Under the pieces are notes generated by a model that worked only from the letters and a program-made list of their open reading frames with translations, was not told the DNA's origin and did no database searches. 64,000 nucleotides of DNA from Hyalangium minutum. Its GTDB lineage: Bacteria > Myxococcota > Myxococcia > Myxococcales > Myxococcaceae. The translations under genes and the position numbers were made by a program. Shown here piece by piece: positions 1 to 15,809 of the stretch. How positions within the stretch are numbered: the first letter of the stretch is position 1; every line of letters begins with the position of its first letter. The DNA is taken from the NCBI RefSeq assembly GCF_000737315.1, contig NZ_JMCB01000003.1, positions 248,001-312,000 of the forward strand. Direction: 5' to 3'.

Positions 1-116
1 CCCAGGCGAAGCTGATGGAGCGGCTGCGTCAGGAGATCTCGGTCCGTCGCTACCCGGAGCGGCTCAAGCTGGCAGAGGAGAAGAGCAAGCCCCAGGGCGA
101 GGGGGAGGCGAGATGA
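1..116 (+). CDS. 3' end of an upstream gene (partial), translationally coupled to the Rhs gene
   Basis: Open frame from position 3 (QAKLMERLRQEISVRRYPERLKLAEEKSKPQGEGEAR*) ends in TGA 114-116, overlapping the ATG at 113-115 (ATGA). Codons are strongly GC3-biased. Confidence 0.7.
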   Translation, partial: QAKLMERLRQEISVRRYPERLKLAEEKSKPQGEGEAR

Positions 117-3100
117 TCCGCCGCGCTCCGCGATGGCTGTGGCTCGTGCTGGGGCTGGTGACACTGGCCACGGCGTGCGACCGGCGCTCCAGCGAGGAGC
201 CCGCGTCCGCCGCGCCGCCCGCGCAGGCTGCTCAACAGGCACAGGCGCTGTCCGGAAGCACGTGCGACAGCGTGGCTCCCACCGGCATGGCGCCGGGGTG
301 GAAGGTGGCGCCGATCCAGGCTGCGGGCCAGAACGTCGCGAGCACGATCTTCCCGGCGTCCGTCGGTGAGCGGGCGATCCTGATCCTGCAGGAGTCGGCG
401 GAGGCGCTGAATCAGGAGTTCAAGACGGAGGCCTCCCTCAACGGTGTGGACTGGGTGGCCATCTCCCGGCAGAGGCCGCTGGCGGCGCGGGTGGTGCAGC
501 TGAGTGCCTCGAACCGGCTGGAGCTGGAGACGAACGGAGGCGTGGCACGGACGTCCGTGGCGGCGCTGTCGCCGCTGCCGTGCGCGGCGGTGGAGGCACG
601 CGTGACGCACGCGGGAGGCTCGGCCGCCACCGTGGAGACGCGCACCTTCACATGGCCCATGGGAGCAGGCCCGGCCCTGCTGGTGGTGGAGTCGGGCAGT
701 GCGTCGCAGGTGACGGGGCGGGTGGTGCTGGGCAGCCTGACGGTGCAGGTGCCGGCCGCAGGCCAGCTCCCCGTGGTGGAGGTGGTGTCGCCGCAGGCGA
801 GCAACACGCTGCGAGTCGAGGTGGGAGGCAGCGCGGGCGCGTGGGTCCGGGCAGTGGTGGTGGAGCCGGACATGTTGCCGCCCATCGTGAGCATGGGGCA
901 GCCCGCGGAGGGCGCGCAGCTGAACGCCTCGCCGGTGGAGGTCCAGGGCACCGCGGGAGCCGGGGCGGTGGCCGTGAAGGTGGGGGCGGTGGACGCGGTG
1001 CTGTCGCAAGGCCAGTACACGGCGCAGGTGCCGCTGGTGGAGGGGCCCAACGCGCTGGTGGCCGAGGTGAGAGACCAGTGCGGCAACGTGGCGCGAGTGT
1101 GCCGGCCGGTGGTGCTGACGACGGCGCCGCCCACCGTTGTTATCGAGGGAGTTACTGACGGCCAGGTCTCGCGCGAGCCACTGCACCCCACGTGGACGGT
1201 GACGAGCAGCGGCCCGGTCACGGTGGAGGCGACGCTGGATGGCGCGCCCTTCGTCGGCGGCACGGCTGTAACGGCCGAGGGCTCGCACGAGCTGCGGGTC
1301 ATGGTGCGGGACGCGGCGGGCCGGGAGGCGCAGGCGCAGGTGGGCTTCGCGATCGACACCACACCGCCGCGACTCACGCTGACAGGAGTGGAAGAGGGGG
1401 AGCGGCGCAATACTCCGGCGGTGCTCGGCTTCACGGTGGAGGAGGAGCACCCGGGCTCGGTGGAGGCCACCCTGGATGGGGCTCCCATGGCCTCGGGGGA
1501 CACGGTCTCGGCGGAGGGCGCGCATGTGTGGACGGTGGCGGCCACGGACGCGGCGGGCAACCGGTCCGAGGTGCAGCGCCACTTCGTGGTGGATGTGACG
1601 GCTCCCACGCTGGAGGTGCTCTCACCCGCGCCGGGCAGCTTCACCCAGGCGGGCTCCGTCGAGGTGGTGGTGGCGGCGGCGGATGACGGGCCGGTGGCGG
1701 GCGTGTGGCTGGGGAACGCGGAGCTGACGCTCGGCACGGACGGGAAGTACCGGAGCCTGGTGGTGTTGGAGGAGGGCAGCAACCTGCTGGTGCTGGTGGC
1801 TCGGGATGCGGCGGGCAACAGCGCGCAGAGCTCGCTGGCCGTGACGCGGGACTCCACGCCGCCCCAGCTCACCCTCACCACCCCGGCCGAGGGCGCGAAG
1901 GTGGCGGGGGACTCGGTGCAGGTGGAGGGACAGGCGCAGGACACCACGCCGCTCACGGTGCGCGTGGCGGGGATGACCGCGGCGGTCGCGGCGGATGGTC
2001 ACTTCCAGCTCTCGGTGGCCGTGGCGCAGGGCCCTGTCTCCCTGGAGGTGGTGGCCACGGATGCGGCGGGGAACACCGCGCGTCTGGTGCGCGGCATCCG
2101 CGTCAACACCACGCCCCCGAGGTTGGATCTGACGGCACCGGCCTCGGGCACGGTCACCGAGGAGTCCTCCATCGAGGTGTCCGGCTTCGCGAGGGCGGCG
2201 GATCGCACGGACACGGTGCGGGTAGAGGTGGCGGGAACCGAGCACGGTGTGAGGGCGGATGGCAGCTTCTCGGTGCAGGTGCCGCTGGAGGTGGGCCTGA
2301 ACACCGTGTCCGTCACGGCGGTGGATGGCTATGGCCTGCGCACCCCGCGCACCGTGCGGGTGGAGCGCCAGGGGCCTCAGGGGCCCGGTCCTGGAGATGG
2401 AGGCTCGGGAGACGGTTCGGGAGGCGGCACGGACGGAGGCTCGGGGGAAGACACCCCGGATGCAGGCAGCGGAGCGCCGGATGCGGGCTCGCCCGGTCCC
2501 GTGCCGGATGGCGGCATCCCGAGCGAGCCTCCGGTGCTGGTGCTGGCCTCGCCCCAGGAGAACAGCCTCTGGGGTGTGGAGCGGGTGTCGGTGCTGGGCC
2601 GTGTGGAGGGCGGAGACCTGCCGCTGCAGGTGACGGTGGATGGACTGCCAGCCGCGGTGACGGGGCGCCAGTTCTCCGCATCGGTGGCGCTGCCTGAAGG
2701 CTCCTCGATGCTGCACGTGCGCGCCGTGGACGCGCTGGGCCGGATCGCCGAGGTGCGGCGGCAGGTGAGGGTGGATCAGACACCGCCCTTCTTGGAAGTG
2801 ACGCGGCCGGAGCAGCCGTCGACGACCGTGAGCGAATCCCCATACCTGGTGGAGGGCCTCGCGGGAGACGCGTACCTCGCGGGCGTCACGGTGAACGGGG
2901 CGCCGGTGATGGTGCTGGCCGGGCACTTCTCGTCCTCGGTGGCCCTGGTCGCGGGAGACAACACCGTGGAGGTGGAGGCGGTGGATCTCGCGGGTAACCG
3001 CTCGCGCGCCGTCCGGACCTTGCGGGTGGAAGCGCTGCCGCCTCAGCTGACCGTGCTGGAGCCGGTCGATGGCTCGGAGGCCACCGAGCCGGTGGTGAGG

Positions 3101-6100
3101 GTGACGGTGAAGGTCGAGTCCTCCGCGCCGCTCGACGAGGTGCGCATCGGCACGGGCATCGCGGCGAACCTGGGCTCGGGCCAGTACACGGCCCAGGTGC
3201 CGCTGGCGCTGGGAGAGAACGTCATCCCCGTGAGCGCGCGGGACACGCTGGGGATGACGGGCTCGGCCACCGTGCGCGTGCGCTACCGCGATCCGAGCAC
3301 TGAGCCGTTGACCGTGACGGGGGTGGATCCCTCGGATCAGGCCACGGAGCTGGAGCCGGACACGCTGGTGAACGTGGCCTTCAACAAGGCCGTGAAGCCT
3401 GCGTCGGTGCGGGCGGGCTTCACGGTGAGCGTGGAAGGGCAGCCGCTGGCGGGCGGCTGGTCCGTCGCGCACGGAGCACAGATCGTCTCCTTCATTGCGC
3501 GCGATCCGCTGCCGGAGGGCGCCACGCTGCAGGTACGGGTAGCGGGCGTGGAGCCGGTGCAGGGGCCGGGGATGCAGGGCGAGTTCCGCAGCATGTTCAC
3601 GGTGCGCCGTCCACTGACCCGGCTGCGCGGCCAGGTGGTGGACGCGCGGCGCGAGCCCGTGTCCGGCGTACGGGTGGAGGTGGAGGGCCAGGGCCTCTTC
3701 ACGCGCACGGGAGCGGACGGCAACTGGGCCCTCTTTGGGGTGCAGCCGGGGCAGGTGGTGCTGCGCTACGAGGGAGGCGCCTCCTCGGAAGGGCAGGTCT
3801 TCCCCACGGTCCGCCGGCGGTTCGCCGTGGAGGCCGAGCGGGACAATGAGGAGTCCACCGTGGTGCTGACGCCCGTGGACGCCGAGTCCGCGGAGCCGGT
3901 GGATACCTCCCTGCCGCTGCACCTCACCTTTGGGGGGAGGCATGGGGCGCTGGAGGTGGACATCCCCGCGGGGGGGCTCATTCTCGAAGGAGGATCGACG
4001 CGCGGCCTGGTGACGCTCACGCAGCTGCCGCTCCACTCGCTCCCGGTGCCCACGGAAGGCGCCTTGCGCCCGGTGGTGGTGTGGCAGCTCCAGCCCGCCG
4101 GGACGCGCCTGGTGCGGCCGGTGGTGCTCCGCCTGCCCAATCGGCTGAGTGCGCCGCCCGGCAGCCGGGCCGCGCTGTTCACGTATGATCCCGAGGCGCA
4201 CCGGCTGCACATCGCGGGGCTGGCCACGCTCAGCGCGGATGGCACACAGCTCGTGTCGGACGGTGTGCTCGAGGCCGGCTCGCTGGAGTACTTCGGCTAC
4301 CTGCCGCTGCCCGAGGAGTCCTCCGTCGCGCGGGCCGGGGCCGTCTCTCCCCGTGTGGCGAACCTGGGCCCGCTGCCCCGGCCACCGTCTGACGGGCTCA
4401 TCCGCCCGCTGACCCAGGGCTTCGGGCTGGATCCTGGCAGCGCGCTCGCCATCTGGGACTCCTACCAGCCCTTCATCGCTCCCGCCGCCGTCATGGGGAC
4501 GGTCCGAGGGCCTCGCGAGCAGGCGGTGGCCCTCGATCTCTCCTCGCCGAGCCTGGGCGAGTCGCGGCGGGTGGCGTTGGATTCGCAGCTGCGCTACCGG
4601 ATGCCGCTCTCGGTTCAGGCCCGCTCGCTCTATCCCCTCTCGAGCAGTGGCCGGGATTCGCTCGTGCTGGCCCTCGAGGGCGTGGGCCCCGAGGGACAAC
4701 GGCTGGGGCCGCCCAGCGGGGGCTCCTGGCGGCAGGAGAGCCCCCAGGGGCAGCGCGCGGAGCTGTCCACGCAGGTCGAACTCTCGCTCGGGACCAGCTC
4801 GCTCTGGGCCACGGGCACCACGGCGCGCGGACGCAACGTACTCCGGCTGAACGCCGAGCTGTCCCTGGCGGATGGAGGCGTACCGGATGGGGGCGCGACC
4901 TCGGGATTGCTGCGCGTCCAGCGGGGGGATGGAGGCTCGGCAGGAGGGGAGGACAGTGAGGGACTGGTCCGCTTCGCGGGCATGCCTGTCCGGGTGACCG
5001 ATGGCTGGCACGAAGGAGGGTCGATCTCCGGCCCGGCGGGCCGGTATGCCGCCTCGATCATCATGCTCCAGTCCTCCTGGATCCCTCCCGCGTCGGTCCT
5101 GGCCTGTGTTCGCCTGCCCATCGGATGGAACGTCCAGAGCTGGGTGGCGTGGGATGGCCGTGTCCGCACGCGCAAGGCCCCCTCCACCGCGGAGGAGTGC
5201 TCGGGCCCCTGGGAAGTCCTGGCCTGGCCTTCGCCCATCATCCCCGACATCGACGTGCTCGTGGATGTGCGGTGGTTGCACGGCAACATCACGTTCGTGG
5301 ATCGGCAGGGCGAGCCGCTCCCGCCGCCGTGCAGCGACTTGGTGGTGCGCCAGGGCACCGAGGTGACCGGGCTGTCGCAAGACGCCGTGCGGAGCACGGA
5401 GGTTCACTTCTTCCGGGAGGATAATCTCTCCACCCCCATCGTCAGCTACGCCGTCGCGGATCCCGAGCAGTGTGACTCGTATCCGGGGGCCCCGCATGGC
5501 CGCTATGCCAAGGTCCGCTACGGTCCCTCCACCCTGAGCCGCGTGGCCTCGCGCCGCGACAGCCAGCGGTTGCTCCCGGGGGACCGGCTGGTGGTGTTCG
5601 CCGTCAACCATGCCACGGGCTATTCGGGCATGGAGGTCGTCACCGTTCCCTCCGTCAACCAATCCTCTCGCGCCGAGGATGGGAGCTGCCCGGCGGATGA
5701 CGCCGCGGGCGGCCCGATGGCCGTGCAAGATGGGAGTCGCACGGTCTCCGTCTCTCGCTGCACGCTGCAGGATCTCGGCATCGAGGCGGATCTCAAGCTG
5801 TACCCGCCGGAGATCGACGTGCGTGTGGAGCGCCAGTCTCGGGCCGAGGGATCTTCCCAGGAGGCCCTGGAGCCCAGCCTTGTCCGCCATAAGGGCGCGG
5901 CCACGACGCGGGACAACTTCGTGAGCGTTGCCACGCACTGGCGCGTCCGGCGCCAGCCCGCGCGCTCGTGGGATCCGGGGGTGTTGCCTCCCGTGAATTC
6001 TTCCTGCGAGGGCGGGAGCCAGGCGGCTGGAAGCACCTGTGCGCCCCAGATCCTCCTGGACGAGGGCCCGCGAGGCACATGGGCGGAGCACTACTGCGGG

Positions 6101-9100
6101 GAACTTCCCGAGCCGCGGACCCCCGAGCAGCAGGCCCTCTGCCTGAAGGATGACCGCGAGCTGGCGGAGGTTCCGGTGGGGGTACCGCCCCTGGCTGGGC
6201 GCGTGGTGCGCATCACTGGCTCGGCGGTGGAGGAGCCAGCGGTGGCGAGCTTCCACGTGGCCCCGGGCCGCTCCACGACGACCGTGCAGACAGCGCTGCG
6301 GCGAGTGGAGCGGGACGGGCGCGAGGTGGTGCTCAACAACCTGACGCGTGCCTACTACTACGTGCAGGTGGTGGGGCACCCCGTGCTCCCGCGGGATCGC
6401 AACAGCGATGGCACGCTGGATCCCTCGGAGGAGAACGCGCCGCCGCCCGACTTCGAGGATGATGAGGACGCCCCGGGGATTCCCGAGGGAGTCGTCACGC
6501 TGAAGAGCGTCTACCGGAGCGTGGAGCCCGAGGGGCGCATCGAGCGCTACGATCGAGCGCTCGAGCACGAGTTCCGGGTGATGGAAGTGGGCTCCTCCCG
6601 GGTCACGGCACGGACGGAGCGGGGCGAGGAGCGCCCGCTGCCCCAGCCGGGGCAGCCTCCGTCGTCTGCGGCCGCCAGCCCGGAGGACGTGGCCTATCAG
6701 TTCCTGCTCAATCTGCTGGAGCCAGAAGATCCGGGGCGGACGGGGCCGCCGAGCAGCCAGTACGTGCTGCGGCTGGGCACGGACTCCTTCGGCATCGAGT
6801 GCCCCATCGAGCTGAACGCCTCGGCGGGCACGCTGCGTGGCACGTGCGAGGGCGAGTACCTGCCGGAGGTGCTGAGCGCGGGGGATGTGCTCTACCTCGA
6901 GGTGTACTTGCGCGGTAACGCGGAGAACGTGCTGTACCGCTTCAACTTCGACGGTCTGTCCATGCGGGAGGACTACCTGGGGGCCTCCAGCCGGTTCACC
7001 GCCCACCGCGCGGTGGAGCAGCAGAATGGCAAGCCCGTGGAGGATCGGCCGATCTCCCGGCTGAACGAGGCGCACTTCTTCCTCTCGCCTCACGAGCTCA
7101 GCTCAGGACGGATCCGGCTCTGCACCAACGCGGAGTGCTCGGGCGACGGGGCGGTCATCAAGGACGCCACCGTCTTGTGGACGGCGGCGGGCTCCTACGC
7201 GGTGAGCGAGCAGGCGACGGGCAGTGCTCCGGGGCGGCTGGTCCAGGAGGTCACGTCAGGCGCAGGGAACGCGCGCCACCTTCGGCTGGGACTGCCTGCC
7301 TCGGTGACGGCGATGCCGGGGATCGCGGCGGCGGGCGCGGGGATCTTCCTGGTCAAGGACAGCGAGTCTCCGCCACGAGCGCGGCAGGTGGAGCGCCTGG
7401 GAACGCCGAAGGGACGCTTCCAGGGGCTGAACGCGCAGGCGCCGGGCCAGGAGGCCGTGGCGGGCATCAATGTGGCGGATCTGCACCTGGCCCTGACGCA
7501 CACGGACTTCGCGGTGCCGCAGCTCGCGGGAGAGGTCTCCTTCTCCAGGACCTATGCCAACCAGAACGATCTGCCCTCGCCCATGGGCGTGGGCTGGAGG
7601 CACGAGCTGGACGGCTTCGTGCTCGAGGAGAGCCTCGGCCGCTATGTCGTGAACCTGGGTGGGCAGGCCTGGGGCTTCATCCGGTGCACCACCGTGGATG
7701 AGGAAGCGCAGACCGCCAGCGGGTGCATGACGGACAAGACCCACGGCATGTCGCTGAAGGTTGACAGCGAGGGCGTCCAGCTCACCACGGAGCAGGGGAG
7801 TGTGTACCGGTTCAACCGGCCGGCGGTGAAGCGGGACCAGGAGGGCCGGCGCAAGTGGCTGCTGACCAAGTTCCACGATGGCCATGGCCGAGGCGAGCAG
7901 GACGGGTGGACGCACCTCACCTATGCCGAGGGCACCAACCGGCTCACGCAAGCGAAGCGCACGCCTGGGGAGCTGTCGCTGGAGCTCAAGTACTGCGAGG
8001 ACTTCTCCCGCGAGGACTGCGATGGCGTGGCGCCGGACGCGCCTGGCAACCTCAAGTTCCTGGCGCGCAGCGAGGGCTTCAAGCTGCTGAAGGGCGTGGT
8101 TCTCAAGAACAGCCAGGGCCAGGAGCTGCACATCGTGCGCTTCAAGCACGACCGGTGGGGCAACCTGCTGGAGGCCGAGCGCACCACGGATCCGCCCACG
8201 CAGAAGTGGAAGTACACCTACGCGCCCATTGCCGATGACGTGCCGTCCATGATGGCCTGGCGTGCCATCAATGAGCTGTCCGAGGCTCGCCTCGAGGTGG
8301 CTGGTCATCCCCAGTGGGTCGCCACCTACGGGCGCGGCGGCGCCGAGTGCTATGCGCACCTCGAGGCCTTCGAGTGTGTGAGCTCGGTGACGCAGACAGG
8401 CTTCATGGGCAACGTCCTTCAGGTGCAGGGCGAGGCGGGCCATCGCCAGCTCAAGCTCCCCACGGGGAACTCCGCGGAGGTGTCACTCAATGAGTATGGG
8501 AACGTCACCTCCTCGGCGTCGGAGGGGCAGGCGGCGCGGCGGCTGACGTGGCCCAGCTCCCAGCGCGGGGGCGAGGTGCGGCTGGAGAAGTCAGTCTCTC
8601 CGAGCGGCCGGACCCTGCGCTATGGCACGGATCACCAGCTGCGCCTGGACGAGGTGAAGCTGGAGGGGAGCTCGGACGTGGTGGGGCTCGAAGCGGGGGC
8701 GCTCGTCTCCGTGTTGGCACGCGATGCCCGGGGCTTGCCTACCTCGGGGAAGCTGTCCACGGCCAATGGTCCGGCCGAGTGGTCCATGCCCCGCTCTCAG
8801 TCGGGGGACGTGCTGGGCCTCTCACTGGGGGGCACGCAGCTCTTCTCGCGGGTCACGGACGAGGAGGGCCGGATCACCTCGGAGCGGGATGCGCTGGGCA
8901 ATACGACCACGTTCACGTTTGGCGCGTTGGGGTTGCCTGTCAGGATCCAGGTGTCCTCGGACTCCGCGACGTCGGGGCTCGTCCGCTACACGCTGGTGCT
9001 GGAGTACGACGCCTATGGGCGTCTGATCCGCCGCTTCAATGAGACGACGGGCGAAGCGGAGTCCTGGCGTTACGACGGCCAGGGCAACATGCTCGAGCAC

Positions 9101-12100
9101 ACGCTCACGGGGGAGCCGTCCGAACGGTGGACGTACACCTATACGTACGGCGATCAGCGGCTCACCGTGGTGGAGCGCCTGGAAGGCACGGCCTACACCC
9201 GCACCGCCCTCTTCGAGCAGGGGCTGCTGAAGAGCGAGCAGCTCAGCTACGGCACGGGCAACGCGTCACGTGCCTATGAGTACGAGGGCGGGCGGCTCAA
9301 GAAGAAGACAGACGAGCTGTCAGTCACCTGGGAATACACCTACGACAGCGCGGGCCGGCTGAAGGTGGTGAAAGCGAATGGCCGGACCGTGGAGTCCTAC
9401 GGGCTGGATGAGGACGGCATCCTCATCTCCACCACGGACCGCGAAGGGCACACCACCCAGATCGGCAACGACTCGCTGGGGAGACCCGTCTCGTGGACCT
9501 ATGAGGATGGGTACAAGGAGGAGGTGCGGCGGGATGCCCAGGGCGCCATCGTCTGGGAGAAGAAAATGTCTCCCGGCGCGGACAGAGCCCACGTCTTCGC
9601 TCAAGAGGTGGACGCGCTCGGACAGGTTCTGAGCCGCCGGAGCGCGGAAAATGGGAGCGGAGTGGAGATCGTCTCCACCTATGACGCCGCGGGGAGAGTG
9701 CGGACGCGAGAGGATCGGGGCAGGGGCCTGAACGAGTCCTTCGAGTATGGTGACGTGCTCGGAAGGCTGACGCGCTATCAGCGGACCGTGGCGTCCGCCG
9801 CGGGGAGCCAGAACTGGATCGAGACCCGTCAATACGTGGATGAAGGGGGCCGCACGGAGCTCCGCATCCTGCGCCAGATCGACACGGGTTTAGGGCCGCG
9901 GCAAGAGAACCAGGTCCTGGTGCTGGATGCGCTGGGGCGGGTGCTGAAGGACCAGCGTCTGGGTGCGGGGGTCTTCGAGTACACCTACGACGCGCGAGGC
10001 AACGTGCTGGAGCGTCGGCACTCCGTGCTGGGAACCACGTCGTATACCTACGACGGGTTGGGGAACCTGCTGTCGATGACGGAGCCGGGGGGCGTCACCA
10101 CCACGTACACGGTGGATGCGGCAGGCCGGGTGCTCACGCAGGAGGGGCCTCACGATCAGGAGCGGTGGACGTTCACCTACGATCTGTTCGACCGGCCGCT
10201 GACGCAGGTGCTGGCGCAGGCCGGGAGCTCGCCGCAGGCTGCGTGGAGCTTCGAGTATCCGGGGAATGGGATCGTCATTGAGACGGATCCTCTGAGTATC
10301 GCGACGACCCGGCGTTTCAACTCGCGCGAGCTGCTGCTCTCGGAGGAGCGAGGGAGCCAGACGGCGGAGTACGCCTACGATGGAACGTGGCCTCGCCTGC
10401 ACCTCATCTCCCATGAAGGTTCGGAGCGGAAGCTGACGCGGAGCTTCGATGACCTCGGGCGGCCGCTCCAGCAGGTGGAGTTCTGGAAACAGGGGGACCA
10501 CTCCTATACGTACAGCACGACCACGGCTTGGACGGGCAGGCGCGGGACTCGCCAGGAGCGGTGGGAGGCCACGGACGCGAGCGTCCGGACGCTCACGGCG
10601 ACGATCCGGGTGGACGGGCTGGGGAACCTCATCGAGCAGGAGCAGGGGGGCCTGACGGACGCTTGGGCCTACGATGCGGCCGGACTGTTGGCACGTGAGG
10701 CACTGGCGGGGCGTCCGGAAAAGCGCTTCTTCTACGAGCAGGATCGGCTCGTCCGGATGGAGAACGGCTCGGAGACGACGCTGTACGAGTATGACGCCGC
10801 GGGCCGGCAGTGGAAGGAGACGGATCCTTCGGGGCGCGAGCGCACGCGGGTCTACAACGCACAGGGCCTGGTGGCGAGCGAGCGCTTCGGAGCAGGGGAG
10901 ACGCTGGAGTCCGCGTACACTTACGATCGAGGCGGGGGCCTCCGGACGCTGACGCGTGGCGGGGCACAGTGGAACTTCACGCATGGGCCTCGGGGGGAAC
11001 TCCAGGCCGTCGAACTTCCGGGCGGGCTGGGGACCTTCACCTATCAATACGATGCCTTGCTGCAGCTCAAGGGGGTGACGCCTCCAGAGGGCGGGGGAGC
11101 AGCGGCACAGACCTTCGCGTATGACAACTGGGGCCGGCAGCTGCGCCGGACCCGAGGCTCCAGCGTCTGGTCCACGGCCTGGCAGGGCGGGTTGAGCACC
11201 ACGAGCGACCCGAATGGCGACGTGGTGGAGCAGCTCTACGACGGCCGCGGCCGCGTCGTGCGTGAGCGCTTCGCTCCCGGGAACAGCAGCCGGCCCTTCC
11301 ATGATCTGACAGCGGTGACGTACGCCTATGACGGGCTCGACCAGCTGCTGTTGGCGCAGGAGAGCCGCATCTCGGGAGCGGTCTCCAATGTGTATGACTA
11401 TGACGGGCGGAGCCGGCTGATCTCGATGCGGCGCGGCAGCGAGGAGATCTCATACACATACACGGAGAGCGGGCAGAAGCGGACGGTCACGTCTCCGTCC
11501 GGCACGTTGCGCTACGAATACGACGCGCAGGATCGGGTGCGGCGCATCGAGAGCAGCCAGGGGCCGGTGGTGGCGGTGGGCTGGGAGCCGGGAGGTCTGC
11601 TCTCGGAGGTCAGTGGCAACGGGGTGGTGGAGCGGTACGCGTATTGGGGCCATGGGCTCATCCGCTCCATCGCTTCGCAGTGGGACGGCCCCTCGGCGGG
11701 CACGCTGCGGTACGAGTACGGCTACGATGTGCGCGGCAACCGCCTGGAAGAGCGCTACACGGCACCGGGGGCCACGGCGTTCGAGGTGACGCAATTCGGG
11801 TACGACGCGGCGGACCGGCTGACCGGGGTGCGCTACCCCACAGGCGAGGCCGAACTCTACCTCCTGGCAGCTGACGGCTCGCGCCTGGAGGAGAAGCACC
11901 TGCAGGGGTACTCAGGGGGACTGACTCCCCAGGCGCTGGCCAACGCCACGAATGCCACCCAGCACTGGCGGTACGCGTATGACACCGCGGGAGGGCTGCA
12001 ACGCATTGATGACGTGTTGACGGGGGGCGTGGAAGCCCAGGTCACCACGGACGCGGGAGGCCGCGTCGTCGCGGAGATGCGAGGTGGCACCACGCGGCAG

Positions 12101-14161
12101 TATGGCTGGGACGCAGGAGGGCGGCTCGCTTCGACCAAGCGGATCACCGCGCAGGAGACGGTCGAAGCCTCATATGCGTATGGCTTTGACGGACTGCGGC
12201 GGACTCGGACCGTGAACGGAGTGAGCACCCGGTATGTGTGGGGTGCGAACGAAGAGCTGCTCGAAGAAGGGCCGGCTGTGGGAAGTCGGCTGTTGTATGC
12301 CCAGGCAGGCTTCGGAGCGGTGGCGGCGGGAGGAGAGCGGCTGCTGCGGGATGCGCTGGGCAGTGTCGTGGGGCGCGTGGGTCCGTCCACGGAGCTGTCT
12401 CGCTATGGCGCGTGGGGCGCACTCCGGCAGGGAGCGCCGCCCCAGGGCATGGAACCGTCCCTGGCCTACGCGGGGCAATCTCTCGACAGCGAAACAGGGC
12501 TGAGCTACGCGCAGCAGCGTTGGTACAGCTCGGAGACCGGGCGTTTCCTCTCGGAGGATCCCCTGGGAGCGGCGGCGTACCTCTCGACCCCGACCGAGCT
12601 GAACCCCTGGCTCTATGCGAGGTCCAATCCCCTGACGTACCTGGATCCCTCGGGTTTGTGGTCCTGGTCTCAGGCTGGAGTGGGGCTGGCCAGAGCTGGC
12701 AGGAAAGCCTGGCATGAAACGGCCAATGCTTTCTCGTGGGCCGCTCGTCCTCTGAACGGCGCGTTCGGAGTGTCCTCGGGACACTACGACAAGAAGGGAC
12801 GATGGAGGCTTCGGGATACAGGCACCTTCAAAGAGGAGGCGAAGAAGCAGCTCAAGCAGATCAAGGAGGTCGCGGAGTACGTGAAGGACCACCCGGTGGA
12901 GACGGTGACTGGGCTGGTGGTGGAGCCGGCGAAGGCGATCGGTACCGGGATTGCGGCCTGTGTCGTCGGCGCGACGACGCAGGGCGTGGTGGGCGACGAG
13001 GCGAGCCGTGACTGTGGCGAGATGCTCCCGAAGGCGATCGGATCGGTAGCGGGCACTTTCTCCGGGGCAGGCGCGGCGATCCGGACCGCAGGACGCGTCC
13101 GGCGTGCCGCGGCAGATATGCGTACGGCCATGAGGAGGAGCGTCTCGGCCGCTGATGACATGGCCAGGACGAGGCTGGGCCCGCAGCGCGGATGGCCTGA
13201 CGAGGCCCCGAAGCCCGCGAGGGCCGGCGCCAATGACTGCGCGGGTGGGGTCTGCCAACGCCCAGGACAATGCTTCGTGGCGGGCACTCCCGTCCTGACC
13301 CAGGAAGGTCTCAAGCCCATTGAGCAGATTGTCGAAGGGGAACTGGTCTGGTCACGTAACGAGGAGACGGGCCAATCGGATTGGCGGCCCGTGGTGCGGA
13401 CGTTCGTGACGCCGGACCAGCCAGTGCTGAGACTGGAGCTGACGGACGAGGCCGGTCAGCGCACCGTGCTGGGAGTGACTGGGGAGCACCCGTTCTGGGT
13501 GAAAGACCTGGGATGGGTGGGAGCGTCGTCGCTGCTCCCCGGTCAGCAGGTGGCCAGCGCGCACGGAGGATGGCTCAAGGTGGGGGCCGCGACGTGGGAG
13601 CAGGCGCGCGCCACCGTCTTCAACTTCGAAGTGGAGGAATTCCACACCTACTTCGTGGGCGACGTCGGCGCGTGGGTCCACAACAGCTGTCAGCAGCCAT
13701 GGTTGTTCGCGGCGGGACAGGGGGATGTGTACACGCTCCTGGAGAAATTCAGGAAGACTCACACGTTAGGGAAAGCGGAGACCTTTGCGCTGGCAATGCT
13801 GGAGAGTGGTGAGCGTGCATTTGGAATCAACTCGGGTTTGTTCAAGGGCAGGGATTCCCGGATTCATGGCTTTGAAATGTTGAGGGAGCACGGGTTGCTG
13901 AAGAAAGCCACCATATACAGTCAGGAGCCCTTCCTGCTGCACGCAGAGGCTCTGGCGGTCATTCGTCTGTGGGAGCGGCTGCAGGGCAAAGACCTTTCAC
14001 TGATTCGGCTGTACGTCGACAACCCAACCTGCAAGCTGTGTCTGAGCGGCCTTCCCAGACTGCAAGTGGCGCTTGGGATCAAACGCTTGGAGATTTATGG
14101 CCCGGGAACCATTCACATCAGCAAGCCGTCTCTCCACCCCATTGACCTTCTCAAGAATTGA
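113..14161 (+). CDS. Giant lipoprotein Rhs/YD-repeat polymorphic toxin (Ig-like repeats, Rhs core, HINT, deaminase-like C-terminus), 4682 aa
   Basis: Lipobox LATA-C22 (TGC 176-178). About nine Ig-like repeats ending in D(A/L)xG(N), a Big_5-like and a carboxypeptidase-regulatory-like domain, a DUF6531-like segment (SFSRTYANQ...MGVGWRH), and many YD repeats. Rhs core end GRFLSEDPLG...NPLTYLDPSG (D at 12644). HINT CFVAGT...VHN 13271-13684. HAE (13940) and PTCKLC (Cys at 14030, 14039). Confidence 0.93.
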   Translation: MIRRAPRWLWLVLGLVTLATACDRRSSEEPASAAPPAQAAQQAQALSGSTCDSVAPTGMAPGWKVAPIQAAGQNVASTIFPASVGERAILILQESAEALNQEFKTEASLNGVDWVAISRQRPLAARVVQLSASNRLELETNGGVARTSVAALSPLPCAAVEARVTHAGGSAATVETRTFTWPMGAGPALLVVESGSASQVTGRVVLGSLTVQVPAAGQLPVVEVVSPQASNTLRVEVGGSAGAWVRAVVVEPDMLPPIVSMGQPAEGAQLNASPVEVQGTAGAGAVAVKVGAVDAVLSQGQYTAQVPLVEGPNALVAEVRDQCGNVARVCRPVVLTTAPPTVVIEGVTDGQVSREPLHPTWTVTSSGPVTVEATLDGAPFVGGTAVTAEGSHELRVMVRDAAGREAQAQVGFAIDTTPPRLTLTGVEEGERRNTPAVLGFTVEEEHPGSVEATLDGAPMASGDTVSAEGAHVWTVAATDAAGNRSEVQRHFVVDVTAPTLEVLSPAPGSFTQAGSVEVVVAAADDGPVAGVWLGNAELTLGTDGKYRSLVVLEEGSNLLVLVARDAAGNSAQSSLAVTRDSTPPQLTLTTPAEGAKVAGDSVQVEGQAQDTTPLTVRVAGMTAAVAADGHFQLSVAVAQGPVSLEVVATDAAGNTARLVRGIRVNTTPPRLDLTAPASGTVTEESSIEVSGFARAADRTDTVRVEVAGTEHGVRADGSFSVQVPLEVGLNTVSVTAVDGYGLRTPRTVRVERQGPQGPGPGDGGSGDGSGGGTDGGSGEDTPDAGSGAPDAGSPGPVPDGGIPSEPPVLVLASPQENSLWGVERVSVLGRVEGGDLPLQVTVDGLPAAVTGRQFSASVALPEGSSMLHVRAVDALGRIAEVRRQVRVDQTPPFLEVTRPEQPSTTVSESPYLVEGLAGDAYLAGVTVNGAPVMVLAGHFSSSVALVAGDNTVEVEAVDLAGNRSRAVRTLRVEALPPQLTVLEPVDGSEATEPVVRVTVKVESSAPLDEVRIGTGIAANLGSGQYTAQVPLALGENVIPVSARDTLGMTGSATVRVRYRDPSTEPLTVTGVDPSDQATELEPDTLVNVAFNKAVKPASVRAGFTVSVEGQPLAGGWSVAHGAQIVSFIARDPLPEGATLQVRVAGVEPVQGPGMQGEFRSMFTVRRPLTRLRGQVVDARREPVSGVRVEVEGQGLFTRTGADGNWALFGVQPGQVVLRYEGGASSEGQVFPTVRRRFAVEAERDNEESTVVLTPVDAESAEPVDTSLPLHLTFGGRHGALEVDIPAGGLILEGGSTRGLVTLTQLPLHSLPVPTEGALRPVVVWQLQPAGTRLVRPVVLRLPNRLSAPPGSRAALFTYDPEAHRLHIAGLATLSADGTQLVSDGVLEAGSLEYFGYLPLPEESSVARAGAVSPRVANLGPLPRPPSDGLIRPLTQGFGLDPGSALAIWDSYQPFIAPAAVMGTVRGPREQAVALDLSSPSLGESRRVALDSQLRYRMPLSVQARSLYPLSSSGRDSLVLALEGVGPEGQRLGPPSGGSWRQESPQGQRAELSTQVELSLGTSSLWATGTTARGRNVLRLNAELSLADGGVPDGGATSGLLRVQRGDGGSAGGEDSEGLVRFAGMPVRVTDGWHEGGSISGPAGRYAASIIMLQSSWIPPASVLACVRLPIGWNVQSWVAWDGRVRTRKAPSTAEECSGPWEVLAWPSPIIPDIDVLVDVRWLHGNITFVDRQGEPLPPPCSDLVVRQGTEVTGLSQDAVRSTEVHFFREDNLSTPIVSYAVADPEQCDSYPGAPHGRYAKVRYGPSTLSRVASRRDSQRLLPGDRLVVFAVNHATGYSGMEVVTVPSVNQSSRAEDGSCPADDAAGGPMAVQDGSRTVSVSRCTLQDLGIEADLKLYPPEIDVRVERQSRAEGSSQEALEPSLVRHKGAATTRDNFVSVATHWRVRRQPARSWDPGVLPPVNSSCEGGSQAAGSTCAPQILLDEGPRGTWAEHYCGELPEPRTPEQQALCLKDDRELAEVPVGVPPLAGRVVRITGSAVEEPAVASFHVAPGRSTTTVQTALRRVERDGREVVLNNLTRAYYYVQVVGHPVLPRDRNSDGTLDPSEENAPPPDFEDDEDAPGIPEGVVTLKSVYRSVEPEGRIERYDRALEHEFRVMEVGSSRVTARTERGEERPLPQPGQPPSSAAASPEDVAYQFLLNLLEPEDPGRTGPPSSQYVLRLGTDSFGIECPIELNASAGTLRGTCEGEYLPEVLSAGDVLYLEVYLRGNAENVLYRFNFDGLSMREDYLGASSRFTAHRAVEQQNGKPVEDRPISRLNEAHFFLSPHELSSGRIRLCTNAECSGDGAVIKDATVLWTAAGSYAVSEQATGSAPGRLVQEVTSGAGNARHLRLGLPASVTAMPGIAAAGAGIFLVKDSESPPRARQVERLGTPKGRFQGLNAQAPGQEAVAGINVADLHLALTHTDFAVPQLAGEVSFSRTYANQNDLPSPMGVGWRHELDGFVLEESLGRYVVNLGGQAWGFIRCTTVDEEAQTASGCMTDKTHGMSLKVDSEGVQLTTEQGSVYRFNRPAVKRDQEGRRKWLLTKFHDGHGRGEQDGWTHLTYAEGTNRLTQAKRTPGELSLELKYCEDFSREDCDGVAPDAPGNLKFLARSEGFKLLKGVVLKNSQGQELHIVRFKHDRWGNLLEAERTTDPPTQKWKYTYAPIADDVPSMMAWRAINELSEARLEVAGHPQWVATYGRGGAECYAHLEAFECVSSVTQTGFMGNVLQVQGEAGHRQLKLPTGNSAEVSLNEYGNVTSSASEGQAARRLTWPSSQRGGEVRLEKSVSPSGRTLRYGTDHQLRLDEVKLEGSSDVVGLEAGALVSVLARDARGLPTSGKLSTANGPAEWSMPRSQSGDVLGLSLGGTQLFSRVTDEEGRITSERDALGNTTTFTFGALGLPVRIQVSSDSATSGLVRYTLVLEYDAYGRLIRRFNETTGEAESWRYDGQGNMLEHTLTGEPSERWTYTYTYGDQRLTVVERLEGTAYTRTALFEQGLLKSEQLSYGTGNASRAYEYEGGRLKKKTDELSVTWEYTYDSAGRLKVVKANGRTVESYGLDEDGILISTTDREGHTTQIGNDSLGRPVSWTYEDGYKEEVRRDAQGAIVWEKKMSPGADRAHVFAQEVDALGQVLSRRSAENGSGVEIVSTYDAAGRVRTREDRGRGLNESFEYGDVLGRLTRYQRTVASAAGSQNWIETRQYVDEGGRTELRILRQIDTGLGPRQENQVLVLDALGRVLKDQRLGAGVFEYTYDARGNVLERRHSVLGTTSYTYDGLGNLLSMTEPGGVTTTYTVDAAGRVLTQEGPHDQERWTFTYDLFDRPLTQVLAQAGSSPQAAWSFEYPGNGIVIETDPLSIATTRRFNSRELLLSEERGSQTAEYAYDGTWPRLHLISHEGSERKLTRSFDDLGRPLQQVEFWKQGDHSYTYSTTTAWTGRRGTRQERWEATDASVRTLTATIRVDGLGNLIEQEQGGLTDAWAYDAAGLLAREALAGRPEKRFFYEQDRLVRMENGSETTLYEYDAAGRQWKETDPSGRERTRVYNAQGLVASERFGAGETLESAYTYDRGGGLRTLTRGGAQWNFTHGPRGELQAVELPGGLGTFTYQYDALLQLKGVTPPEGGGAAAQTFAYDNWGRQLRRTRGSSVWSTAWQGGLSTTSDPNGDVVEQLYDGRGRVVRERFAPGNSSRPFHDLTAVTYAYDGLDQLLLAQESRISGAVSNVYDYDGRSRLISMRRGSEEISYTYTESGQKRTVTSPSGTLRYEYDAQDRVRRIESSQGPVVAVGWEPGGLLSEVSGNGVVERYAYWGHGLIRSIASQWDGPSAGTLRYEYGYDVRGNRLEERYTAPGATAFEVTQFGYDAADRLTGVRYPTGEAELYLLAADGSRLEEKHLQGYSGGLTPQALANATNATQHWRYAYDTAGGLQRIDDVLTGGVEAQVTTDAGGRVVAEMRGGTTRQYGWDAGGRLASTKRITAQETVEASYAYGFDGLRRTRTVNGVSTRYVWGANEELLEEGPAVGSRLLYAQAGFGAVAAGGERLLRDALGSVVGRVGPSTELSRYGAWGALRQGAPPQGMEPSLAYAGQSLDSETGLSYAQQRWYSSETGRFLSEDPLGAAAYLSTPTELNPWLYARSNPLTYLDPSGLWSWSQAGVGLARAGRKAWHETANAFSWAARPLNGAFGVSSGHYDKKGRWRLRDTGTFKEEAKKQLKQIKEVAEYVKDHPVETVTGLVVEPAKAIGTGIAACVVGATTQGVVGDEASRDCGEMLPKAIGSVAGTFSGAGAAIRTAGRVRRAAADMRTAMRRSVSAADDMARTRLGPQRGWPDEAPKPARAGANDCAGGVCQRPGQCFVAGTPVLTQEGLKPIEQIVEGELVWSRNEETGQSDWRPVVRTFVTPDQPVLRLELTDEAGQRTVLGVTGEHPFWVKDLGWVGASSLLPGQQVASAHGGWLKVGAATWEQARATVFNFEVEEFHTYFVGDVGAWVHNSCQQPWLFAAGQGDVYTLLEKFRKTHTLGKAETFALAMLESGERAFGINSGLFKGRDSRIHGFEMLREHGLLKKATIYSQEPFLLHAEALAVIRLWERLQGKDLSLIRLYVDNPTCKLCLSGLPRLQVALGIKRLEIYGPGTIHISKPSLHPIDLLKN
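881..3290 (+). repeat. Tandem bacterial Ig-like domain repeats (about 9) with a central Gly/Asp-rich linker
   Basis: Recurrent units of about 80-90 aa start PP(x)L(x)(L/V)xxP and end (V/A)xAxD(A/L)xGN. Linker GPGPGDGGSGDGSGGGTDGG...PDAG at about 2370-2520. Boundaries are approximate. Confidence 0.75.
13271..13684 (+). other. Pre-toxin HINT / bacterial intein-like domain within the Rhs protein (138 aa)
   Basis: Block A C1FVAGTPV, block B TGEHPFW (TxxH), block F VFNFEVEEFHTYFV, block G WVHN followed by Ser(+1). Confidence 0.92.
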
Positions 14162-14173
14162 CCCGGCATATAG

Positions 14174-15640
14174 CTATTGCGCCTGCGGATTCTGAGTCGT
14201 GGGCGGGCGCGCTCGTTCCCAAGCAGGGTCGTAGCACTCCTCCTGCCACTGGTAGGTATCGTCGCTGCATGGCGGTCTCTTGTCGGCCACGCGCACCCAG
14301 CAGCCGCCATGAATGATTTTCTCCCAGTCTCGCTTGCACGGGGGGCGGCGCTGGCCCGGGAGCGGTTGCTTGGGCATGTCCAGGGAGATGGATCTGGCCT
14401 CAGAGGGAATCGATTGAACTTCCATCCGAGTGGTGAGCGCATCGTCTCCCAATCCGCGGGTACCGGCATCTGGCTCCATGCCCGCATCCAGCGCTTCAGC
14501 ACGCGCCGTCTCAGACGGCTTTGCGCTCCACTCGGGAGCCATCCAGCAGGGCCCCACCACCGCCAGAGACATCGTGAGCAGCGCGAGGAGATTCCTCCAA
14601 GGGACGGGCCGAACTTGCTGCCTCGCCTGGAGAGTTCCTGCTTTGTGCTCAGTAGCTTTGGCTGGGGCCGTCTTCGCATCGACGGGCCTCGCGGGCCCGG
14701 CTTGAGTCTGTACCGCAGGCTTCACTGAAGCCCAGAGAGGAACATCCGCTGCGGAACCTAGATGCTCCGCCGAGGTTTCCGCTGCTTGTGCCAACTCACT
14801 TGCCGTCCCGCGAGCCTCAGGCTCCGCCGCGAGCAGCCGCTCCACCAGCGCCGAGAGCTCAGGCACCACTCGGGGGTTGAGTTCATGCGTGCATTGGCGT
14901 CGCGCAACTCCACCCTGGATTTGTTTCTTGAGGTCTTCAGGCTCCGTGCCAGGAGGGGGATAGATCCGAGTCAATAACCGGTACAGCGTCACGCCCAGCG
15001 CATAGAGATCGTCCGCCGGGGTGGCGTGGTAGCGCGCTCCCGGCGTGCTCCAGTGTTGCCACTCGAAGCGTAGCGCCTCGGGGCTGCGGTACTCAGGCGT
15101 GTTGGGAGGCAGCACCCGATGGGTGAGTGGGGGAGCGCCCTTCCACGTGCCCGAACCAAAATCCGTGAGCACCGCCCGGCCCTCGGGCTCCACAAGAATG
15201 TTGTCGCCCTTCAGGTCGCGGTGCAGGCATTCCCCGCGGTGCAACACCTCCAACCCCCATGCCAGCTGGGCCACCACCCGGAGCACTTCGCGGCTGGTGG
15301 GAGTGTGCATCCGCGCCCACTCGTACAGCCGCTGGCCCCGGATCCACTCCATCACCACATAGGGATGCCGGACTCCAGGCTCGGCCTCCCACCAACCTTG
15401 GTCGATGAGTCGAGGCACGGCCGGGTGGCGGGTGCGTCTGAGCAACTCCACCTCCCGTTCGAAGCGCGGGTCATGAGGGAACACCGCCATCTTCAGTGCC
15501 ACGGGCGGGGAGCCCGGGTCGTCGGCGCGCCGGGCGCGGAACACGGCGCCGTAGCTGCCCCGGCCGGCATAGCCCTCGATGCGCCAGGGGCCGACCAGAT
15601 CTCCGATGTTCAGCGAGTCAGGTGTCCTCGTGCCCGTCAT
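14174..15640 (-). CDS. Hanks-type Ser/Thr protein kinase with a TM helix and a Cys-rich C-terminal domain
   Basis: GRGSYG, VALK, HRDLKGDN, DFG and TPEYRSPE motifs; hydrophobic LLALLTMSLAVVG; C-terminal PGQRRPPC...GGCW...RPPC...CY. Confidence 0.92.
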   Translation of the reverse strand: MTGTRTPDSLNIGDLVGPWRIEGYAGRGSYGAVFRARRADDPGSPPVALKMAVFPHDPRFEREVELLRRTRHPAVPRLIDQGWWEAEPGVRHPYVVMEWIRGQRLYEWARMHTPTSREVLRVVAQLAWGLEVLHRGECLHRDLKGDNILVEPEGRAVLTDFGSGTWKGAPPLTHRVLPPNTPEYRSPEALRFEWQHWSTPGARYHATPADDLYALGVTLYRLLTRIYPPPGTEPEDLKKQIQGGVARRQCTHELNPRVVPELSALVERLLAAEPEARGTASELAQAAETSAEHLGSAADVPLWASVKPAVQTQAGPARPVDAKTAPAKATEHKAGTLQARQQVRPVPWRNLLALLTMSLAVVGPCWMAPEWSAKPSETARAEALDAGMEPDAGTRGLGDDALTTRMEVQSIPSEARSISLDMPKQPLPGQRRPPCKRDWEKIIHGGCWVRVADKRPPCSDDTYQWQEECYDPAWERARPPTTQNPQAQ

Positions 15641-15809
15641 GGCACCGGAGACTACCCAAGGGGTCGCTCGCCGTCATGCCGCTCTTTCAGGTAGGATGGC
15701 GGCGATGGAGAATCTCCCGAGAGAGACGGAGCGTCTCCGGCCGTGGACGGTTCACAGGCGTCTCGCTCTGGCAACCGCTTGGCTCGGGAGTTGCTTGAGG
15801 CCGGGCGGT

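Follow-up and report, generated by a model that had tools for sequence, protein, structure and literature searches.

A large Rhs toxin gene of Hyalangium minutum with a predicted MafB19-like deaminase tip, no adjacent immunity gene, and a unique asparagine beside the zinc site

Introduction

How does a bacterium come to carry a polymorphic toxin gene with no immunity gene beside it? This question is raised by a 64,000-nucleotide (nt) stretch of the Hyalangium minutum genome (contig NZ_JMCB01000003.1, positions 248,001 to 312,000; hereafter the window, in whose own numbering positions are given), where a 14-kb Rhs/YD-repeat gene ends close to the stop codon of a convergent protein kinase gene. 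A sequence-only reading of the window had pointed to this junction and offered three explanations: (a) that export as a lipoprotein removes the need for immunity, (b) that immunity is encoded upstream or in trans, and (c) that a block consisting of the kinase and an Rpn gene displaced the immunity gene and the toxin is inactive or silent. Here we show that the C-terminal tip of the Rhs protein, a predicted MafB19-like zinc deaminase, belongs to a family whose members, where examined, have a small co-oriented gene at their stop codons, Imm1-like wherever its sequence could be compared, that this gene is missing at the H. minutum junction, and that the window tip alone has an asparagine in place of the basic residue that precedes the zinc-binding cysteines of its relatives. 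Our preferred account, to which we give close to an even chance, is a secondary loss of the immunity gene at a variable junction, with a tip that is attenuated or silent.

Results

The Rhs and kinase genes converge with no gene between them

The Rhs open reading frame (ORF) occupies 113..14161 of the plus strand and encodes 4682 amino acids (aa), with its TGA at 14159-14161, while the kinase ORF occupies 14174..15640 of the minus strand (488 aa; stop codon at 14174-14176). The 12-bp gap that the sequence-only reading had described is borne out, in its coordinates and in the identities of both genes, by the ORF list, the Pfam matches, and the NCBI gene calls (GCA_000737315.1, JMCB01000003.1), which give both genes identically and place no gene between them. 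No sigma-70-like promoter or intrinsic terminator was found within 13900-15900.

It might be argued that a small protective gene is hidden at this junction, either over the 3' end of the kinase gene or nested in the 3' end of the tip, or that the assembly is wrong here. A plus-strand ORF of 183 codons (14177-14728, TTG start) does begin 16 nt past the toxin stop, and in relatives of the toxin the immunity gene often starts inside the last toxin codons. However, this ORF was rejected as a shadow of the kinase gene: it is the same-phase antisense frame (codon position 1 opposite kinase position 3), its product is arginine-rich and has no Pfam match, and when scored with codon frequencies trained on five window genes versus their same-phase antisense frames, it has a log-odds of -22.4 where the kinase frame reaches +37.4 on those bases. 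Furthermore, no frame of 13876-14800 resembles the Imm1-like profile described below, and the junction lies in the interior of a 1.23-Mb contig, with the window translation exactly matching the recorded protein. We therefore regard a hidden gene or an assembly error as very improbable, and the earlier observation that no small co-oriented gene follows the Rhs stop holds.

In a genome of 65-70% guanine plus cytosine (GC), the same-phase antisense frame routinely gives long shadow ORFs. Inside the Rhs gene itself they lie on the minus strand at 1622-7093, 9890-11302, and 12170-13270, the longest with 1823 codons, and ORF length alone thus tells little in such a genome.

The tip belongs to a MafB19-like family of predicted deaminases

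When 1.84 billion representative proteins were searched exhaustively with HMMER, 61 homologs of the 156-residue tip were recovered at E<=1e-3. Nearly all of them lie at the extreme C-termini of proteins of 94-2862 aa whose N-terminal parts are unrelated and include RHS, HINT, eCIS_core, and haemagglutinin-like repeats; such a C-terminal position behind unrelated carriers is a hallmark of polymorphic toxin domains. A word-indexed search with the tip alone as query gave no match, and a metagenome scan with four sister tips gave no confirmed one. The Pfam family PF14437 (MafB19-deam) is matched by 39 of 41 aligned tips, with a best E value of 1.9e-14. The window tip scores 22.4 bits against this model (E=1.2e-4), under the 27-bit gathering cutoff, and 97.8 bits (E=1.2e-31) against a profile built from 58 other tips.

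G45, H84, E86, D110, C114, and C117 do not vary in the alignment of the 41 tips. In the wider comparison, the histidine of the HAE motif is present in all 59 other members, and its alanine and glutamate are each present in 58 of the 59, one member having lysine for glutamate. The window tip also has N47 at the end of strand 2, V109 at the end of strand 3, and G129 at the start of strand 4. The features listed for the MafB19 clade are an asparagine at the end of strand 2, HxE, a valine at the end of strand 3, +xxCxxC, and a glycine at the start of strand 4 (Iyer et al. 2011, Table 1), and the consensus of the tip family fits all five.

An AlphaFold2 (AF2) model of the tip (predicted local distance difference test score, pLDDT, 68; predicted template modeling score, pTM, 0.66) has the alternating strand-helix order of the deaminase type. 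The PDB fold matches listed for it are nucleic-acid or nucleotide deaminases (among them DYW, SsdA, DddA, TadA, and CDA), and they are weak, with a best E value of 2.2e-3 and a template modeling (TM) score of about 0.5; a PDB sequence search for structures solved in the tip family or in its immunity family returned nothing useful. Taken together, the homologs, profiles, and motifs identify the tip as a predicted MafB19-like zinc deaminase. By analogy, its substrate may be DNA cytosine: members of the clade as defined by Iyer are active DNA cytosine deaminases in vitro, with Cg sites tending to be preferred, the Pfam and Iyer MafB19 profiles not being identical (10.1101/2023.06.29.547047).

An Imm1-like gene regularly accompanies the tip in its relatives

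The sequence-only reading had assumed that a small co-oriented gene normally follows a toxin of this kind, and had proposed comparing the downstream neighbors of the closest C-terminal homologs. That comparison supports the assumption for the tip family. At each of the seven loci found through the tip, the toxin stop is accompanied by a small co-oriented gene, which starts between 35 nt before and 47 nt past this stop and encodes 117-155 aa or is cut by a contig end (Table 1). One further locus (L007) was left out as uninformative, its contig ending 75 nt past the stop. The same arrangement of tip and immunity gene is present at L030 and L033, two loci that were found via the immunity protein and are hence biased in this respect.

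Where their sequences could be compared, the downstream proteins are related to one another. Identities are 35% over 107 residues between L002 and L006, 53% between L008 and L033, and 40% between L008 and L005; the truncated L034 fragment matches the profile of the partner family, and a conserved W...G..L...F...W pattern is common to these proteins. The family takes in the partners at L002, L005, L006, L008, L030, L033, and L034, and a search with its profile gave 26 members (P0066-P0091) of about 117-197 aa. Of these 26, six give a weak match to Pfam Imm1 (best 2.4e-4); Imm1 was originally described as an immunity family from the neighborhood of deaminase toxins (Iyer et al. 2011). By sequence, then, the regular partner of the tip family is a divergent Imm1-like protein. 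Pfam mostly misses this family, and automated annotation would often report its toxins as having no known immunity.

One of the seven loci has a MafB19-like tip fused to eCIS_core within a run of eCIS_core genes, and here too a 142-aa gene lies 12 nt downstream; toxins delivered by Photorhabdus virulence cassettes (PVC) and extracellular contractile injection systems (eCIS) have been described as entirely without immunity genes (Iyer et al. 2011).

No Imm1-like gene was detected within 74 kb

When four immunity proteins were used as tblastn queries and a profile of 28 family members was run over six frames, no Imm1-like sequence was found in the window or in the 10.2 kb upstream of it (best E=5, 2.9 bits), and the same searches gave no remnant of an immunity gene at the junction or under the 3' end of the kinase gene. 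Immunity directly upstream, one half of explanation (b), is thereby excluded: the genes there encode a PpiC-type rotamase and a 10,488-aa protein, and the six frames of these 74 kb gave no Imm1-like match.

The other half of explanation (b) is that an active tip does reach kin, which would be protected by a cognate protein (Imm1-like, SUKH, or SUFU) encoded elsewhere, for example in an orphan immunity island or beside a paralogous toxin. This would agree with the intact catalytic motifs and intact ORF of the toxin, and the direct search covered the 64-kb window and 10 kb upstream. SUFU and SUKH are listed among the partners of the MafB19 clade, making a non-Imm1 partner conceivable (Iyer et al. 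2011), and myxobacteria have dozens of toxin-immunity loci (PMC10433427). However, every relative examined has its immunity gene adjacent, often overlapping the toxin stop, and a protein encoded in trans would leave unexplained the asparagine at an invariantly basic position of the window tip. Moreover, a profile search of a 5.8-billion-protein collection that includes the proteins of this genome listed no family member traceable to the assembly; only two partner-family matches were NCBI-sourced, one a protein that bears the name of an uncultured Gimesia sp., the other P0089, which comes from other assemblies, on contigs of 1-2 kb. This search used a 5-residue word filter seeded from four sequences and could miss a diverged copy, so that it is moderate and not decisive evidence against a copy in trans. 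On balance, we consider immunity in trans unlikely, at perhaps one chance in a handful.

A syntenic locus carries tip and partner as one low-GC island

A scan for the HINT domain plus the tip, with one genome per species, found one syntenic locus, L008, an 8.1-kb contig of a Myxococcaceae metagenome-assembled genome, whose match covers residues 1-503 of the 519-residue query. By comparing the two loci, we found that L008 1740-4438 aligns with window 11000-13683 at 73.6% nucleotide identity, from the Rhs core through the end of the HINT domain, and then breaks off. DNA homology restarts at window 15713, where L008 6926-8057 aligns with 15713-16909 at 75.7% over an Rpn/YhgA-like gene; its product is 67% identical to the L008 copy (L008 6926-8058, also PF04754). 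Between these anchors, the two loci have in common only 109 bp inside the tip (67.9%). From the HINT end to the Rpn start, the window has the tip and the minus-strand kinase gene, whereas L008 has the tip, an Imm1-like gene (4849-5283) that overlaps the Rhs stop at 4883, a 390-nt spacer, and a minus-strand gene for a Bmp/PnrA-like lipoprotein.

The base composition follows the same division. In L008, the tip (GC 0.537) and the immunity gene (0.483) form one low-GC island within flanks of 0.65, whereas in the window the low values are confined to the tip (0.554; flanks 0.65-0.67) and GC is back at 0.65 directly past the stop. The synteny and the GC islands together indicate that the natural unit is a cassette of tip plus immunity gene, of which the window holds the first half. 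No counterpart, paralog or ortholog, of the kinase gene was seen in L008 or in any other locus compared, and the L008 Bmp gene has no match elsewhere in the window. Explanation (c), displacement of immunity with an inactive or silent toxin, fits these data best, with one correction: the Rpn gene, which it had placed in the displacing block, is syntenic with L008 and forms the right-hand flank of the variable segment. For the inactivity of the toxin, the evidence is indirect and is given in the next section.

Most matches of the scan covered the HINT domain only, and the four that were checked (L009, L010, L028, and L029) have unrelated tips. In Archangium, the Rhs paralogs at L009 and L010 have HINT domains of 60-72% identity and two other, unrelated tips, each followed by a small plus-strand ORF that differs between them (L009 8783-9199; L010 9073-9570). 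Ordinary turnover of tip and immunity gene is thus visible in the wider family. These two loci were considered as a root for deciding between loss and gain and proved unusable, being a paralogous Rhs locus with other neighbors; a candidate IS66 transposase fragment in L008 (5292-5717, minus strand) was dropped for want of Pfam support.

The window tip alone has asparagine at the basic position of +xxCxxC

Residue 111 of the window tip occupies the '+' of +xxCxxC. Arginine is found there in 57 and lysine in 2 of the 59 other members, and asparagine in the window tip alone among the 60 sequences. The sister codons at this place are CGT, CGT, and AGA, from which the window codon AAC is at least two nucleotide changes away, so that the asparagine is not a single-base error. 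In deaminases, the residues just before the first zinc-binding cysteine line the substrate pocket, and it is therefore plausible that the change from arginine to asparagine affects the function of the tip.

The tip has also diverged as a whole. It is 46-52% identical to the sister tips of L008, L005, and L033, which are 62-65% identical among themselves; its score against the outgroup profile is the lowest of the four sisters (97.8 versus 107-122 bits), and for each sister, 45-54 of the 58 outgroup tips are more similar to that sister than to the window tip. The absent neighbor and the absent basic residue, both unique among the relatives examined, occur in one and the same locus, which suggests that they are linked.

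Compared with its three sisters, the window tip further shows a 7-residue deletion before strand 1 (GLPPF... absent; GTxA replaced by ETFA), and about 7-8 residues (IHISKPS) are inserted between its penultimate and last strands.

The carrier is a large, probably exported Rhs protein

The Rhs protein contains, by Pfam, seven Glucodextran_B domains, Big_13, Big_7, and Big_5 domains, DUF6531, RHS_repeat (PF05593; 1.3e-46, six stretches), and PT-HINT, and a TEN_YD-shell is on record for the same protein, which is a singleton at 90% clustering among about 15 billion proteins. The N-terminal array of immunoglobulin (Ig)-like and Glucodextran_B domains suggests an adhesin-like surface protein, and the N-terminus, MIRRAPRWLWLVLGLVTLATAC, looks like a lipobox-bearing signal peptide and is predicted to direct Sec export, probably as a lipoprotein. 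At the other end, the core finishes with a DPxGL-type motif that has its equivalent in the YLDPAGRW of the L008 protein at the same position, and a linker of about 200 residues leads to the PT-HINT domain. This domain scores 82.1 bits (6e-23) against a cutoff of 27.7 and has the N-terminal cysteine as well as the C-terminal HN plus nucleophile; it is predicted to release the toxin tip. Neither a PAAR nor a VgrG domain was seen in the protein with Pfam, and no type VI secretion system (T6SS) gene was seen in the 10 kb upstream or in the roughly 10 kb annotated downstream.

Upstream, the Rhs gene is the last of a co-oriented trio (L001 1-10004 plus window 1-116) with the 10,488-aa gene and the gene for the 278-aa PpiC-type rotamase; the stop codon of the rotamase gene and the start codon of the Rhs gene overlap in ATGA. 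Big_7 and Ig-like domains were the only matches within the 3,045 residues seen of the 10,488-aa protein. The delivery apparatus may include a dedicated foldase and another giant surface protein.

These features bear on explanation (a), which can be put more fully as follows: a lipoprotein, exported by Sec unfolded and then caged in its Rhs shell, would serve as an immunity-independent weapon and would get only into non-kin cells (prey bacteria or eukaryotic microbes), by way of a receptor absent from kin. The predicted signal peptide with its lipobox-like LATAC speaks for this proposal, and the adhesin-like N-terminal array would also suit it. Myxobacteria are predators. Immunity-less deaminase toxins are a recognized theme, free-living Sorangium and Streptomyces being among the examples (Iyer et al. 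2011; Zhang et al. 2012). What is weakened is the dispensability of immunity. The L008 Rhs protein, whose N-terminal part is beyond the contig end, has the same last approximately 1,400 core residues and the same HINT domain and keeps its immunity gene, and tip homologs on other carriers, including the eCIS_core-linked one, also have the downstream gene. Additionally, the immunity-less theme belongs to other deaminase clades (AID/APOBEC-like, OTT_1508, and XOO_2897) and not to MafB19 (Iyer et al. 2011), and the large signal-peptide Rhs proteins of Myxococcus xanthus act in kin discrimination, a role in predation being without evidence (PMC10433427). We hold this explanation to be improbable, somewhat more so than immunity in trans.

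Features of the locus and neighboring genes

The features of the window and the seven tip-ascertained loci are collected in Table 1.

Table 1. Positions of features in the window, and partner genes at the tip-ascertained loci (contig coordinates; distances are relative to the toxin stop)
Feature or locus	Position	Strand	Basis or remark
Rhs/YD-repeat polymorphic toxin gene, intact ORF	113..14161	+	ORF list, Pfam, NCBI record
Predicted signal peptide, lipobox-like LATAC (Cys22)	113..178	+	Translation MIRRAPRWLWLVLGLVTLATAC, followed by DRR; by reading
Rhs core end, DPxGL-type motif YLDPSGL followed by W, residues 4176-4183	12638..12661	+	Sequence
PT-HINT autoproteolytic domain (predicted), QCFVAGTP Cys to WVHNSC	13268..13690	+	PF07591, residues 4394-4525
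C-terminal toxin tip, 156 aa, residues 4527-4682, predicted MafB19-like zinc deaminase	13691..14158	+	Homologs, profile, motifs
HAE catalytic/zinc motif, tip residues 84-86	13940..13948	+	Alignment
Asn (AAC) at '+' of +xxCxxC, tip residue 111, protein residue 4637	14021..14023	+	Alignment
CxxC zinc-binding motif CKLC, tip residues 114-117	14030..14041	+	Both Cys invariant in family
Spacer between convergent stops	14162-14173		12 nt, read directly; Imm1-like gene sits here in relatives
Ser/Thr protein kinase, 488 aa	14174..15640	-	Pkinase 2.5e-31; in the place of the immunity and Bmp genes of L008
Rpn/YhgA-like (Transposase_31) gene, right-hand flank of variable segment	15810..16910	+	PF04754 1.7e-22; NCBI call L001 25698-26798
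L002 (also L003, L004), toxin P0063	4380-4847		Downstream gene 155 aa, overlap 26 nt
L005, toxin P0001, closest relative (53% identity)	3122-3475		Downstream gene 117 aa, 47 nt after
JGI contig, toxin P0011			Downstream gene 138 aa, 9 nt after
L006, toxin P0007, behind RHS/YD-shell gene	2195-2629		Downstream gene 144 aa, 20 nt after
L008, toxin Rhs	4849-5283		Downstream gene 144 aa, overlap 35 nt
JGI contig 4bBvJmkz, toxin P0005, eCIS_core + tip (3001-5175)	5187-5615		Downstream gene 142 aa, 12 nt after
L034, toxin P0013			Downstream gene at least 58 aa, cut by contig end, 8 nt after

The kinase is likewise a singleton cluster at 90% identity among about 15 billion proteins, and its codon-usage log-odds is +37.4 for the C-terminal part and +108.2 for the kinase domain. 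Residues from about 330 to 488 (14177-14650, minus strand) comprise a hydrophobic segment, LLALLTMSLAVVGPCWM, and then a four-cysteine tail (PPCKRDW...GGCW...PPCSDD...EECYDP) that is matched by no Pfam or NCBIfam model; the third-position GC of the tail is lower than that of the kinase domain. The C-terminal part of the Rpn/YhgA-like protein has weak FliH-like matches (NCBIfam, 1e-9); as a putative recombination-promoting nuclease, this protein might have a part in the turnover at the neighboring junction.

Discussion

According to the above-described analysis, the history of this locus could be as follows. A large surface Rhs toxin would be exported by the Sec pathway, probably as a lipoprotein, and its PT-HINT domain would free the MafB19-like tip. 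The tip family normally moves as a low-GC cassette of two genes, the tip and an Imm1-like gene that begins at or just inside the toxin stop. In H. minutum, the segment between HINT and Rpn would have been rearranged, so that a convergent kinase gene now abuts the toxin stop, and the immunity gene would either have been deleted, leaving no trace, or never have been acquired along with the tip. Without immunity, no lineage can survive the delivery of an active nucleic-acid deaminase to its own kin, and for this reason the tip is most likely attenuated or dead; this could have come about through the unique asparagine together with the divergence from the sister tips, or the tip may alternatively be unexpressed. 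We infer loss as the direction of the event, and a weakening effect of the asparagine would follow from the conservation of the residue it replaces. The loss of immunity and the weakening of the tip could have come in either order.

Several points weigh against this account. The tip retains the HAE and CxxC motifs, Asp110, N47, G129, and the other residues that define the fold, and its 156 codons are free of stops and frameshifts; intact motifs in an open tip indicate purifying selection through most of its history, and the window tip may still be active. The intact 14-kb ORF argues against a gene that has long been silent. The role of the '+' residue is read from its conservation, and the AF2 model of the tip is of moderate confidence. 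The direct search for immunity spans 74 kb of a multi-megabase genome. Finally, the comparison has one syntenic genome, and loss is argued from the family-wide pairing and from GC, with no rooted comparison.

If the tip is in fact active, it might be harmless to producer and kin even without immunity, the exchange of the basic residue having shifted its substrate or its uptake requirement. The tip would then be a prey-directed, immunity-free nucleic-acid editor. We regard this as a long shot, and were it true, it would represent a natural escape from the toxin-immunity lock in a kin-discrimination weapon.

Among known systems, the window protein resembles in build the Rhs4/Rhs5 class of M. xanthus (WapA-like surface Rhs proteins), with about 4000 aa or more, an N-terminal signal sequence (predicted in the window protein), and a variable C-terminal toxin past DPxGL; signal-peptide Rhs proteins of that class mediate kin discrimination independently of the T6SS (PMC10433427). 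Unlike them, the window Rhs gene has no adjacent immunity gene, its tip would be cut off by a PT-HINT domain about 200 residues past the core end, and it stands in an apparent operon with the 10,488-aa gene and the PpiC rotamase gene, all of this being known from sequence alone. Compared with the MafB19-like clade (PF14437), the window tip has the clade's N, HxE, V, CxxC, and G, and RHS repeats and HINT are among the listed carriers of the clade (Iyer et al. 2011). However, it differs in the asparagine at '+' and in its sub-cutoff Pfam score, and its relatives have an Imm1-like partner in place of the listed SUFU or SUKH.

With DddA/DddI and SsdA/SsdI, the tip would share the deaminase fold, and it has the same position as C-terminal domain of a polymorphic toxin; DddA and SsdA are among its weak fold matches. 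However, DddA (SCP1.201-like) and SsdA (DYW-like) belong to other deaminase clades, are delivered by the T6SS, and have an adjacent immunity gene, and a sequence relationship of the window tip to either was undetectable in the PDB sequence search. An adjacent immunity gene protects the producer in the SsdA and BaDTF3 systems; BaDTF3 is Pput_2613-like and does not represent the MafB19 clade.

SitA proteins are small and are encoded in sitBAI cassettes with an adjacent sitI, whereas the window has a 4682-aa Rhs protein without a cassette of the sitBAI type. The two are alike in being myxobacterial polymorphic toxins with a lipoprotein signal, predicted in our case. The SitA lipoprotein toxins are described as passing between cells by outer-membrane exchange, with a need for the lipoprotein signal and for cognate immunity (PMC5562445).

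The immunity-independent deaminase toxins (Iyer et al. 2011) and the host-directed Rhs/Tc toxins likewise have a C-terminal deaminase and no linked immunity gene. However, the former are AID/APOBEC-like, OTT_1508, or XOO_2897 toxins of endosymbionts and pathogens, with PVC delivery, whereas the window tip is MafB19-like and its relatives examined keep the downstream gene.

The components of the locus, a large Sec-type Rhs protein, a PT-HINT domain, a MafB19-like deaminase, and an Imm1-like protein in the relatives, are thus all of known kinds by sequence. What is unusual is the state of the locus, which is probably degenerate; in other respects it is an ordinary case of Rhs tip turnover. At polymorphic toxin loci, toxin and immunity are generally taken to form an obligate pair, and this locus would show such a pair after the immunity half has gone, with breakpoints set by one syntenic comparison and a single candidate defusing substitution visible. 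The divergent Imm1-like partner, barely seen by Pfam, matters whenever "toxins without immunity" are annotated. Moreover, if the arginine or lysine of +xxCxxC is essential, it would allow dead tips of this deaminase family to be recognized simply from their sequence, and it would be a residue of interest where such enzymes serve as tools.

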